A stretch of DNA of 64,000 bases from Selaginella moellendorffii (taxonomy: Eukaryota; Plantae; Lycopodiophyta): the NCBI RefSeq assembly GCF_000143415.4, contig NW_003314272.1, forward strand, positions 840,184-904,183, written 5' to 3'. The position numbers and the translations under genes were made by a program. How positions within the stretch are numbered: the stretch's first letter is position 1; the number at the start of each line of letters is the position of its first letter. Shown piece after piece: positions 16,124-20,648 of the stretch. The notes beneath the pieces are model-generated. The model made no database searches. It saw only the letters and a program-made list of their open reading frames with translations, and had not been told where the DNA came from.

Positions 16124-17635
16124 TTAGGGTTCTTGCATTGGGGAGCGCCATTCTTTCGATCCTATCAACTGGATCCCAGTCGGTACGTCTTGGCAGCTGC
16201 GTACATTGGGCTCGAATCTTGGATCGCTGCGGCGCTTGCAATCGCATCCGTACGGCGCCGCGGCGTGGAAGCAGGGATCCATGGAAATCAGCCTGGAGCA
16301 ATTGGCGGTGGCGCCGCGATCGTCATTGTCAGCGAGGAGGAGCCACGGTTTGATCCCGGCCAGGCCCTGGGCGACGTACCCAAACGTGGATCCGGGGCTG
16401 GTGACGAGCTCGTCACACATCGACAGCAGTACCATCTCCGCCAGCGCCTTCTCGTCGTGCTCCAAGTTGTCTGTCCTCTGCGATTCTTCGTGGCCTGGGG
16501 AGAGAACTCTCACGACTCCATCCGATTCCAGGGAGAAATTTCGTAGCCTCTGGAAGAAGAACCGATCCAGCGATGTCACGAGCGCCGTGGTCTTCGATCT
16601 GGATCTGTTCGAGGGGAGATCAAAGAGGCTGTTTTGGAGGAGGCACTGGATCATCGCTTGGGCGAAGCTGGATTGCGAGTGCGGTCGCAGGCCCAGATTG
16701 GGCGCGAGCTGGCGCATCTGGATCCCGATCAGCTTGCTCGAGTCCGCCATGGAGGCTTTGTAGAATCTGGAAGCTTGATCCCACACGGAGTTGGATGGTG
16801 AGAACAAGTAGCGCCCAAGGTGGTGGAACACGACGGTCTCTTGCTCCGCCGGGAAGAGACAATCGAGCTCGGCCTTGAATCGCGGCACCGCGTACAAGCT
16901 GGGAGCGTAGTACTGGCTACTCCGGATCGACAGCCACGCCACTCGATCGCCCAGCGCGCGCTGCTGCCGCTCGCAGAAGAAATTCTCGCCCAGGCTTGTC
17001 TCGCTGATGATGTCGATGGAGAGGTGGCTGCCGAGCACCCGATCGAGATCGTCGGCGCAGAAGCGATGATCGAACTTGGGCTTGGGATCGCCGAGCGCGA
17101 ATTTGTTGAGGATCTCCCGCGAGACTAGCCAGGAGCTGCGAGGGAATGGCTCACAGAAGAGATTTGCCATGTCCTCGCCGGGATCGATGAGGAGCACCCT
17201 GTCCGTGAGGAGCGCGTAGAGGAAAGTGGCGGCGATGGACACCATCTTGTTGCCAAGGCCGCTGAAGTTGATCCACACCACGAATTTGCACTCGCTAGTC
17301 GTGAGATTCCCGCGGCGATCCCAGGATTGGGGATGATTTGGAGCGCAGCGCGCGTGGAGATCTTCGTACGAGCGCAGTCTTCTCGCGAGGCTTGTAGATG
17401 GGATGTTGCGATCGATCGCGGCTGCACGGTAGTATAGGTGCCGCTGGAGCCGGCTCTGGCATCGATCGTTCTCCCGGATGGGCAGCAATCCATGCAGCGA
17501 TTCTCTATCGCGAGAAGCTCTCGAGGAGGAGAAGTAACAAATTCCTTTGGCTACCTCCCAGATCCGAAACTCTAGAACCAGCAAGTAGATAGAAATCGCG
17601 AGAATTCCCGGCACTAGCATTTTCGTCGCGCCCAT
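16124..17635 (-). CDS. GT37 xyloglucan/galactoside 2-alpha-L-fucosyltransferase (FUT1-like), intronless
   Basis: N-terminal TM anchor; CKFVVWINFSGLGNK; FLYALLTDRVLLID; VFHHLGRYLF; IGIQMR; ALAEMVLLS..LVTSPGSTFGYVAQGLAG; SMDPCFH. The start codon is uncertain. Confidence 0.92.
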   Translation of the reverse strand: MGATKMLVPGILAISIYLLVLEFRIWEVAKGICYFSSSRASRDRESLHGLLPIRENDRCQSRLQRHLYYRAAAIDRNIPSTSLARRLRSYEDLHARCAPNHPQSWDRRGNLTTSECKFVVWINFSGLGNKMVSIAATFLYALLTDRVLLIDPGEDMANLFCEPFPRSSWLVSREILNKFALGDPKPKFDHRFCADDLDRVLGSHLSIDIISETSLGENFFCERQQRALGDRVAWLSIRSSQYYAPSLYAVPRFKAELDCLFPAEQETVVFHHLGRYLFSPSNSVWDQASRFYKASMADSSKLIGIQMRQLAPNLGLRPHSQSSFAQAMIQCLLQNSLFDLPSNRSRSKTTALVTSLDRFFFQRLRNFSLESDGVVRVLSPGHEESQRTDNLEHDEKALAEMVLLSMCDELVTSPGSTFGYVAQGLAGIKPWLLLADNDDRGATANCSRLISMDPCFHAAAPYGCDCKRRSDPRFEPNVRSCQDVPTGIQLIGSKEWRSPMQEP

Positions 17636-17922
17636 CCGGCCCAAAGTTTGGTGATCTCCAAACTCCCGAAGTTTGAAATTCCAAAGCAACGAATATTCTC
17701 TGATTTGTGCCAGGGTACGGAGACCCCATGCCGTCCGTACGTCTCCGAGCTCTCAGGAGCTATGCTGTGCCTCTACGCTAGGGTTTGTGGCAGCGCAGCG
17801 AAGATCCGGGGCGCTCTCCACATCGGTACGTCTTTCAAGCTGCGGGGATCCCGAGCTCCATTCTCCGCGGCGATCGCCTGATCCGGACGGAGCGGCGCGA
17901 GAGATCGGAGGGGAGCGACAAG

Positions 17923-19399
17923 ATGGACAAGGTCGCGGGATGGGTTGGAGGAAGCCTGGCGTCGGCATTCTTCGCGTCGCTGGAGCGATCGTCGTGCGTG
18001 ACCTTGTCGACCACGGACACGGACGACGAGGAGGATGTGCCGCTCGAGGTCCGGGTGGATACCGGGCACCAGAGCAGCGCGTCCTGCGCGGATCATCAGG
18101 GCTACAAGCTGGGGCTCGTCGGCCACGACAAGTTCGTGAGGAGCAATCCCATGTCCGATCGCTTCGGTGTTCTTGGCTTCCACCACGTCGAGTTTTGGTG
18201 TGGCGACGCCTCCAACACCTGGCGGCGATTCGCGTGGGGGCTGGGGATGCATCTGGTGGCCAAGTCGGATCACAGCACAGGGAATCACACGTACTGCAGC
18301 TACGTGATCAGCTCCCGTGAGCTCGTCTTCGCCTTCACTGCTCCTTACTCGTCCAAGAAGGCCGACCAGGAGCTCAGCCAGATGCCACACCCGGGCTTCT
18401 CATCGAGCGACGCACGGCGGTTCTTTTCCATGCACGGGCTGGCGGTGCGAGCGGTGGGGCTCCTGGTGGAGGATGCGGAGGAGGCTTTCCGGAAGAGTGT
18501 TCTTGGCGGAGCTCTGGCGGTGTTTCAGCCCCAGGAGCTCGCGGACGAGGCCACCGGTGCGAAGGCTGTGATATCAGAGGTGAAGCTGCTCGGGGACGTG
18601 GTGCTGAGATACGTAAGCTTGAAGGGATTCTCGGGAGCTTTCTTGCCGAATTACACGCCGGTGGAGAGCCTCCCGCTCACTTCCGGGTTTGTGAGGCTCA
18701 GCTACGTTGCGGCGAATGTTTACAACCTTCTCGACACCGTCAACCACATTGTCAAGTTTACGGGATTCCACGAGGTGGCCGAGTATACGACGGACGACGT
18801 TGGGACCAAAGACAGCGGCTTGAACACCATGGCTCTTGCGAGCAACAACGAGACGGTTGTTTTTTCGCTGAGTGAGCCGACTTACGGGACCAAGCGCCAG
18901 TCGCCCATTCAGACTTACCTGGAGCAGAATGAAGGCTCAGGGATCCAGCGCTTGGCTCTTCAGTGCGACGACATTTTTGGGACTGTGAATGATATCCGTG
19001 ATAGGATCGATGCTGGTGGCTTTGAGTTCTTGCCAGCTCCTGGTCCCGAGTATTATGATTCCATGCGCGGAAAGGTTGGCAGCGTTTTGACTGAAGAGCA
19101 GATACTTAAATGCCAAGAGCTCGGTATTTGGATCGACAAGGACGAGCACGGCATTCTCTTACAAATATTTACCAAGCCCGTAGGAGATAGGTACGTGTGT
19201 CGTATTTCCTTGGCACGACCTAAGTTGTTTTCTACGCAGGCCCACCCTGTTTCTAGAGATCATCCAGCGTTTTACTTCGATCGAAAGCCAGAGTTTTCAG
19301 GCGGACAAGTTCGATGTTGTTGGGAAGGATAACTTTTCGGCACTGTACCGATGCTTGGAAGAGTATGAGAAGACTCTGGATGCAACACGGCAGATTTAG
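17923..19399 (+). CDS. 4-hydroxyphenylpyruvate dioxygenase-like protein, predicted non-catalytic, with an extra N-terminal domain; intron 19191-19239
   Basis: FVRSNPMSDRF, FHHVEFWCGDA, AKSDHSTGN, FAFTAPYS, HGLAVRAV, IQTYLEQNEG, LLQIFTKPVGDR|PTLFLEIIQR, GKDNFSAL..EEYEKTL. A 49-nt GT-AG intron restores the frame. Confidence 0.9.
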
Positions 19400-19851: not shown

Positions 19852-20648
19852 TCATGCTTTGATCTTCTTGGGAGCTGCTTGGTTGTCCAAGACGACGTAG
19901 CTTCCACACCTGGGACAGTGTGGATTCTTCGGGGACAGCATGACGTACATGAGGCAGCTCTTGCATCCGGTCACTATAATTCCAGACGAGGAGCAGTCGT
20001 CGCAAGAAGAGGTCCGTTTGTGGTCCAAGTTGGTCCCCTCGGCGGCCAGTTTTGATGAAGAAGAAACAGCTGCTAGATTGCGTGGAGAAGTCGGCTTGCA
20101 TCCTAAATTCAGTTCCAGGTCCAGGTGCTCTTCCAAGGTGGAAGTCGGGCTGTTGTTTTTCGCGTGGTGAGCTTTGACGGAGGTGGCTCGGCTGCTGTTG
20201 CTCTGGAGGAGATCGAGGCAGAGAGACGAGCTCCGATTCAACGAGCCGGACTGTAGGAGCCGGGGATCGTCAATGGTGCTCAAACCGGTGCTACAGTTGA
20301 CGAAAGTTATGGAGCCAGACTGCGGCAAGAGAAGAACTTTCAGCCAAGAGAAAGGAAGAGGAATGGACAGCAATGAGTTCTTGGTACCTTCAAGTCGAGG
20401 CGCTTCTCCCATCCGGTTGGAAGCGGTGGCTCTTTTTCGTGATCCAGATGGACAGTCTCCGAGGATTGGCACGGACGGATTGCTGGCGGAAGCGGTCCCG
20501 AGCTGTCGACCGGCTTTCCCATCATCAGGCTGAGGATCTTCTGGGGGTCCTCGCTCCAGGCGTGTGGCTCCTTGGCACTTGTCGTCTTGATCGAGCTTGT
20601 GCACAATTCAGCAGCCTGCCAGCCCAGCTCCATTGTTGCAACTGTCAT
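19852..20648 (-). CDS. CFL1 (CURLY FLAG LEAF 1)-like WW-domain protein with EAR motif and C-terminal Cys-rich ribbon; intron 20320-20387
   Basis: PLPTGWEKRLDLK|SGSITFVNCSTGLSTIDDPR (WW-like); LDLELNL; TGCKSCLMYVML..PHCPRCG. Confidence 0.85.

Follow-up and report, generated by a model that had tools for sequence, protein, structure and literature searches.

Why should a copy of the dioxygenase HPPD that has lost two of its iron ligands keep, with every near-invariant residue in place, a short segment in front of its folded body? The question is raised by SELMODRAFT_91092, a gene in a 64,000-nucleotide stretch of the genome of the lycophyte Selaginella moellendorffii (contig NW_003314272.1, positions 840,184 to 904,183 of the forward strand; hereafter the window, in whose coordinates all positions in this gene and its neighbors are given). 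Herbicides target HPPD, the enzyme that opens the route to vitamin E and plastoquinone, and its location and regulation in plants are debated.

We favor the following explanation, to which as a whole we give a probability of roughly 0.55. Residues 1–38 of the Selaginella protein are an ancestral streptophyte N-terminal module of HPPD, made up of a helix ending in S-L-E-[RK]-x-S-C, a V-x-L-x-T-x-D stretch and an acidic tract, and about 25 disordered residues (39–61) tether the module to the folded dioxygenase core. The module, in turn, would act as a tethered docking peptide. Recognized by a conserved protein partner, it would bring HPPD, or in the present case a catalytically dead scaffold of HPPD, into a complex or to a particular place in the cell, a function that would be independent of catalysis. 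We hold the homology and ancestry part of this explanation with high confidence; granted that part, the tethered docking mechanism seems to us to fall slightly short of an even bet.

The HPPD-like gene and its N-terminal segment

The annotated gene is identical (100% over 475 amino acids) to the open reading frame that begins at the ATG at position 17923; its coding sequence, 17923..19190 joined to 19240..19399, specifies 475 amino acids. As the sequence-only reading had it, the frame opens at this ATG and runs into the HPPD part with neither a stop codon nor an intron. The features of the gene, all on the plus strand, are as follows (pLDDT, predicted local distance difference test).

17879..17922, plus strand: minimum 5′ untranslated region; RNA-derived contigs start at 17879 (runs X1 and X5) or at 17918 (runs X4 and X7)
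17923..17925, plus strand: start codon, in the context gacaagATGg; its alignment column holds a conserved Leu in almost all relatives
17926..17988, plus strand: predicted single helix (residues 2–22), rich in Gly, Ala and Ser, with W7, F16, F17 and L20
17965..18018, plus strand: conserved core of the module (residues 15–32), A-F-F-x-S-L-E-[RK]-x-S-C-[VI]-x-L-x-T-x-D, with Cys25 invariant
18016..18036, plus strand: acidic Ser/Thr-Asp/Glu tract (residues 32–38), reading D-T-D-D-E-E-D
18037..18105, plus strand: linker predicted to be disordered (residues 39–61); pLDDT is below 50 for residues 26–57
18106..19190, plus strand: exon 1 part of the HPPD-like body, with both iron-binding His residues replaced (H261Y, H343R); core pLDDT above 90
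19191..19239, plus strand: sole intron, 49 nucleotides, GT..AG, near the 3′ end; its splice joint is present in contigs of four runs
19240..19399, plus strand: exon 2, with the retained Glu ligand in F-L-E-I-I-Q-R and a diverged C-terminus; stop codon TAG at 19397–19399

Contigs from four public runs, each from a different study, skip the intron at 19191–19239 and hence derive from RNA. In all four studies they join the motif to the HPPD body, and one contig record is unbroken over 17918–19188/19238–19577, which puts the two on a single spliced message. Because no ATG was found in reading the sequence of 17879–17922, the assembled message has its first AUG at 17923; upstream, no RNA-derived contig was placed between 17655 and 17836. 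The only polymorphism that the RNA contigs contain within the N-terminal segment, T18004C, is synonymous. We also observed that 18511–18643 occurs in two versions, differing at six positions, in RNA contigs of three runs; these are probably two haplotypes of the sequenced strain, both of them expressed.

The codons of the segment bear a clear mark of constraint. We compared its 25 central codons among Selaginella, Marchantia, two mosses and one further locus (L005), and in all five sequences the differences pile up at third positions. Between Selaginella and Marchantia they number 8, 1 and 17 at the first, second and third codon positions, with 15 codons differing only synonymously versus 6 that change the amino acid. 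As far as codon comparison can tell, this pattern shows that the module is translated and is under selection on the encoded peptide.

The body of the protein has fared otherwise. Of 171 core columns in which 67 other HPPDs show at least 90% conservation, 31 (18%) are changed in this protein, as compared to 0–4% for ordinary HPPDs, and yet all of the near-invariant residues of the module are intact; the contrast, drawn from only some ten near-invariant module positions, is descriptive rather than statistical. In place of the 2-His-1-Glu iron site of active HPPDs, the protein has H261Y and H343R together with the Glu of F-L-E-I-I-Q-R. A second candidate for the third iron ligand, the Glu in N-F-S-E-L-F, was rejected, as Ala occupies that position in active algal HPPDs; the true site is F-[IL]-E-I-I-Q-R. 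The two-domain vicinal-oxygen-chelate fold is evidently present, as judged by Pfam matches to the Glyoxalase and HPPD N-terminal domains and by the AlphaFold2 model of the core. This two-barrel fold is shared, at 52–66% identity over the body, with canonical plant HPPD (EC 1.13.11.27, of the Arabidopsis/Ginkgo type) and with SELMODRAFT_165961, the second HPPD of Selaginella. Canonical plant HPPDs, however, start at a short M-G or M-A N-terminus and lack the module, whereas SELMODRAFT_165961 has a Ser/Pro/Arg-rich extension that resembles a transit peptide and that does not contain the motif.

HPPDs and small proteins with the same module

The sequence-only reading knew of no HPPD carrying the motif. 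That view did not hold up, and the fusion is not peculiar to the dead enzyme. Among the 120 best HPPD relatives, ten have the module at their N-terminus, and nine of these ten retain both iron-binding His residues; the carriers are Marchantia, Riccia, Calypogeia, a Sphagnum cluster, moss-like transcripts, a GC-rich sequence, Spirogloea and another algal sequence. In the extended HPPDs of Marchantia polymorpha, Riccia fluitans, Calypogeia fissa, Sphagnum species and Spirogloea muscicola (SM000008S22170) the same module occupies the same place, as it does in other mosses and in zygnematophyte-grade algae, and most carriers other than the Selaginella copy keep the His/His/Glu site. Since carriers with an intact iron site are found in liverworts, mosses and algae, the fusion is therefore to be regarded as ancestral and not as a new event. 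One moss HPPD had seemed to be an example without the motif, and it was rejected as such: its transcript is truncated at the 5′ end, with the frame open through the motif.

Gene structure fits the same picture. In the Marchantia genome (locus L003) a single exon encodes both the motif and the start of the core, and the 3′ intron matches the Selaginella intron in position; the Marchantia gene appears to be single-copy. Likewise, first-exon fragments of moss HPPDs, in which the motif is followed on the same exon by the beginning of the core, were among the profile matches described below. The junction between module and core is thus in frame and intronless in Marchantia, mosses and Selaginella.

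In a tree for which only the core was used, the carriers form a paraphyletic set (a zygnematophyte grade, mosses, liverworts and Selaginella), and fern and seed-plant HPPDs are without the module. The lycophyte Diphasiastrum complanatum has a recognizable relic of it at L001:3838–4003, directly upstream of the annotated HPPD ATG. The relic is split over two frames, the helix half lying in one and the half consisting of C-x-x-L-x-T-T-D and the acidic tract lying in the frame of HPPD; it scored in both frames in a six-frame profile scan (E values of 2.5e-4 and 0.015), it has no in-frame ATG, and a short repeat is found just upstream. It represents either decay in progress or an insertion or deletion in the assembly. 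A profile scan of the 3 kb upstream of SELMODRAFT_165961, the active HPPD of Selaginella, and of the canonical Calypogeia HPPD found no relic of the motif. On these sequence comparisons, the simplest reading is that the module was on HPPD in the common ancestor of the Zygnematophyceae and land plants and was later lost from HPPD, with the Selaginella copy having kept it. A second, independent case of a strongly divergent HPPD paralogue that keeps the module was observed in Calypogeia fissa (P0037, together with a related Logan sequence, P0057). Of 172 conserved core columns, 40 are changed in this copy, which retains His/His/Glu and contains an insertion ahead of the N-P motif; the module is missing from the canonical Calypogeia copy (P0021).

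Most of the module-bearing HPPDs keep an in-frame Met (in M-G-Q or M-G-L) exactly at the canonical HPPD start. The extended bryophyte and algal proteins have their iron ligands and, for the most part, this Met, whereas the Selaginella copy has H261Y and H343R and, in the column of the canonical-start Met, a Thr (codon 47, ACC, 18061–18063). Both Selaginella paralogues in fact lack the Met, one reading V-D-T-G (18061–18063) and the other V-D-V-G, with Val in its place (P0029, residues 59–63); the shared loss is a hint of lineage-specific duplication, although the two copies are not joined in the tree. The conserved Met raises the idea that one single-copy bryophyte gene may make both a long and a short isoform, and, because the Met has been lost, only the long form would come from the Selaginella gene. 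In Sphagnum troendelagicum a conserved copy of the motif lies in frame upstream of the annotated HPPD start Met (L008:2300–2503), and there is no ATG in any frame in the approximately 200 nucleotides from upstream of the motif to that Met. A CTG in a strong context (AGG-CTG-G) at L008:2342–2344 aligns with the start codon of Selaginella, which suggests a non-AUG start and two isoforms for Sphagnum HPPD; the NCBI models for the Sphagnum proteins (435–438 amino acids) omit the extension. Meanwhile, the arrangement in Selaginella and Calypogeia, in each of which the canonical copy is without the module and the divergent copy has it, suggests that the isoforms were divided between the copies after duplication. 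A parallel is provided by soybean HPPD, which reportedly exists as a long plastid-targeted form and a short cytosolic form. Here too an in-frame upstream extension could yield two isoforms from one gene; the module differs from a transit peptide in being acidic and helix-forming.

The module is also found apart from HPPD. A profile built from ten HPPD N-termini and scored against 1.8 billion representative proteins matched 224 of them at E ≤ 1e-3 and 32 at E ≤ 1e-10 (best E value 1e-17). Most of the matches are 56–180 amino acids long, with a median of about 100, and stand-alone proteins of 65–100 amino acids had E values of 1e-14 to 1e-10. A second profile, made from 38 of the small proteins, matched 916 proteins. 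In a pairwise BLASTP comparison, residues 1–38 of the Selaginella protein were 66% identical (E value 1e-18) to an 81-residue protein of the fern Ceratopteris. These searches bore out the sequence-only proposal that the segment belongs to a large family of small uncharacterized plant proteins, and they stand alongside contigs that cover the ATG at 17923; that proposal would have fallen with a transcript start downstream or a lack of homologues, and neither was the case. A word-index search with residues 1–70 gave no match, a blank that must be a false negative because the profiles later found hundreds of relatives sharing long identical stretches.

Named members of the family come from Amborella, Nelumbo, monocots, eudicots, Ginkgo, Welwitschia, Ceratopteris and Adiantum, and all are called "uncharacterized" or "hypothetical" apart from a few whose names look mis-transferred. 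A feature search of the ESM Atlas likewise returned only clusters of "hypothetical protein," from Streptophyta. In the stand-alone proteins of ferns and seed plants the module is the sole conserved part. Examples are Ceratopteris KAH7283147.1, Vigna XP_014509645.1, Brachypodium XP_010231628.1 and Amborella LOC105421079, which have in common with the Selaginella segment a module of about 35 residues with the same near-invariant residues, helix prediction and acidic tract. They differ from it in standing alone at 60–130 amino acids, and most have one Cys more (C-S-C), a [DK]-R-P-L-[MI] box and L-P-V at the C-terminus. The Selaginella segment, by contrast, precedes an HPPD-like body of 410 residues, reads S-S-C, has a weak counterpart of the box in V-P-L-E-V and has no L-P-V. 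From the zygnematophyte Netrium digitus we observed a 125-amino-acid transcriptome open reading frame (P0222) in which the motif, in its algal version, is combined with a D-P-L-P-V box and a long tail that is acidic and rich in Ser. This may be a genuinely stand-alone protein, or else a partial or alternative isoform of the HPPD transcript.

We found neither the module, nor its occurrence on HPPD, nor the small-protein family described in Pfam, the PDB or the searchable literature. Pfam gave no match for the Selaginella segment, the Marchantia N-terminus or four of the five mini-proteins scanned, with P0271 and the Netrium reading frame matching only below the gathering cut-off; a profile run against every PDB chain yielded nothing better than chance (E values of 0.29 or worse); and a full-text literature search turned up no paper with the motif string, nor did searches on HPPD and bryophytes yield anything relevant. 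The family, with about 900 database members and neither a name, a Pfam entry nor a known function, would gain from the explanation offered here its first concrete functional hypothesis.

What the module may do

Column statistics for the conserved core of the module were compiled from 36 HPPD-linked and 263 stand-alone sequences. In both classes identities are nearly invariant on consecutive positions (A, F, F, S, L, E, S and C), and the Selaginella segment, which has all of the near-invariant residues, fits the core pattern A-x-W-[VLI]-G-x-x-[VIL]-[AS]-x-A-F-F-x-S-L-E-[RK]-x-S-C-[VI]-x-[LVI]-x-T-x-D. Its local profile score is 72.6 bits, and it is the only copy that a six-frame scan found in the window. 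Judged from these alignments, conservation is at the level of identity and appears to span several hundred million years.

The AlphaFold2 model of the Selaginella protein, made from a 94-row alignment, has a helix at residues 2–22 with pLDDT of 55–73, values below 50 for residues 26–57 and values above 90 for the core (predicted template-modeling score, 0.84). For a stand-alone fern homologue the model has a helix at residues 4–29 with pLDDT of 75–89, and the remainder is disordered. In the models the module is therefore a single helix, carried on a tether that is flexible and acidic, and it lies outside the dioxygenase fold. In four representatives the mean Kyte–Doolittle hydropathy of the best 18-residue window is 1.0–1.4, less than the mean of at least 1.6 over about 19 residues expected of a transmembrane segment or signal anchor, and the hydrophobic moment is 0.15–0.37 over 18 residues and 0.44–0.55 over 11. 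With such hydropathy and moment, the helix is therefore not a classical transmembrane segment and is probably not strongly amphipathic. The sequence-only picture of an amphipathic helix with its Cys followed by an acidic tract was thus right as to the predicted helix and the Cys, which is invariant, and holds only weakly as to amphipathicity (hydrophobic moment of 0.29–0.45). Its further suggestions, that the segment may target or dock the enzyme and that the fusion may give a clue to what the small family does, are reasonable conjectures. Inspection by eye of the acidic tract, and of the distance of 15–60 residues that separates the module from the N-terminus in the mini-proteins, argues against a transit or signal peptide.

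We infer a docking peptide because conservation is at the level of identity, because the layout is that of a helix plus disorder and because the module has survived on a copy that lacks two iron ligands. Catalysis would not be needed for its function, since a copy lacking these ligands along with 18% of the conserved core positions still has the module in full; such a copy may have been retained because it presents the module on an HPPD-shaped scaffold. The fixed consecutive identities, the hydropathy of 1.0–1.4 and the low moment point to a protein partner rather than to lipid. We class the system with two known kinds of arrangement, namely enzymes that have an extension for targeting or docking and small proteins that are related to a single module of a larger one. 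MicroProteins are likewise small stand-alone families homologous to one module of a larger protein, and the likeness here is one of sequence relationship alone. A further and tentative step, which we put at well under even odds, is that the mini-proteins are a detached copy of the ancestral HPPD extension and serve the same partner or pathway, that bryophytes make long and short isoforms (with a CUG start in Sphagnum) and that in Selaginella and Calypogeia the long form was given over to the diverged copy. The pathway would in that event be homogentisate, tocopherol or plastoquinone supply, or tyrosine breakdown.

Several points weigh against the docking explanation or parts of it. No docking partner was found. 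In the AlphaFold2 model the helix is not docked on the HPPD core and has a pLDDT of just 55–73, and a weakly hydrophobic helix beside an invariant Cys would also suit a lipid-modified membrane anchor. As to ancestry, the frameshift in Diphasiastrum could be an assembly error, the Netrium reading frame is without an HPPD part, and the history of the module is compatible with either fission from HPPD or capture by it. The idea of two isoforms, for its part, comes solely from a conserved Met codon that may have that meaning. A complex prediction for Ceratopteris HPPD (P0027) with the Ceratopteris mini-protein (P0131) gave a score of 0.02, which counts neither way.

Of the other explanations, a membrane anchor deserves the most attention, and we consider it unlikely. 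Homogentisate-using prenyltransferases are proteins of the plastid envelope, and seed-plant HPPD is largely cytosolic; the Gly/Ala/Ser helix might lie in or on a membrane, with the adjoining Cys S-acylated, and so hold HPPD, the scaffold or the mini-proteins at the envelope or endoplasmic reticulum near these enzymes. Charges flank the 17 uncharged residues of the helix, which has the small-xxx-small spacing (G6, G10, S14 and A18) typical of packed membrane helices; the invariant Cys follows it directly, and it is undocked in the AlphaFold2 model. Its hydropathy, however, is below the usual threshold of 1.6, its moment over 18 residues is low for an in-plane anchor, algal versions have Gln and Asp inside the helix, and the C-terminal flank is strongly acidic. 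Moreover, lipid-binding helices tolerate hydrophobic swaps, whereas the identities of the module are fixed on consecutive positions. More doubtful still is a regulatory role in which the helix folds onto the HPPD core or zips together the N-termini of a dimer and the mini-proteins bind HPPD in trans, as in a Rosetta-stone relationship. HPPD is the sole family systematically fused to the module among the proteins inspected, the distribution has so far been complementary (fused in bryophytes, Selaginella and algae, and free where HPPD is without the module), and the conserved residues form a seam with heptad-like spacing of 3–4. Against this stand the undocked helix and a linker with pLDDT below 50, the retention of the module on a copy whose core surface has strongly diverged, and locus tags that place the Ceratopteris mini-protein and HPPD genes on different chromosomes.

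Two further explanations fare worse. The helix might merely present a SUMO-interacting or kinase-regulated motif, in which [CV]-[VI]-x-L is followed by Ser/Thr and a run of Asp/Glu with sites for the kinase CK2. The pattern is conserved in HPPD-linked and stand-alone classes alike, and presumably the stretch resembles the SUMO-interaction motifs of PIAS and Daxx. But it offers just two to three hydrophobic positions, the strongest conservation (A-F-F-x-S-L-E) lies in the helix, outside such a motif, and SUMO binding is supported by no result of our analysis, so that we regard this role as very improbable. Least credible of all is that the segment is an untranslated leader and that translation starts at Met77 (M-S-D-R-F). 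The NCBI models for Sphagnum and Diphasiastrum HPPD do start downstream of the motif. In Selaginella, however, the ATG at 17923 is the first of the mRNA contigs, in a good context and in frame, the substitution pattern reveals selection on the encoded peptide, and a start at Met77 would drop a conserved L-V-G-x-x-x-F-V-R-x-N-P segment.

Neighboring genes

Finally, we note two genes that flank the HPPD-like gene. Upstream, at 16127–17689 on the minus strand and hence divergent from it, is an intronless gene for a xyloglucan fucosyltransferase (PF03254, E value 4e-98); the RNA contigs of the two genes are separated by a gap of about 250 bases (17628–17878). Downstream and convergent, at 19855–20604 on the minus strand, is a gene for a protein with a GIR1-like zinc ribbon (PF24747) and an L-D-L-E-L-N-L motif of the repression type. 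RNA contigs that start in the HPPD-like gene extend past 19900 into this gene, and the 3′ ends of the two genes probably overlap.

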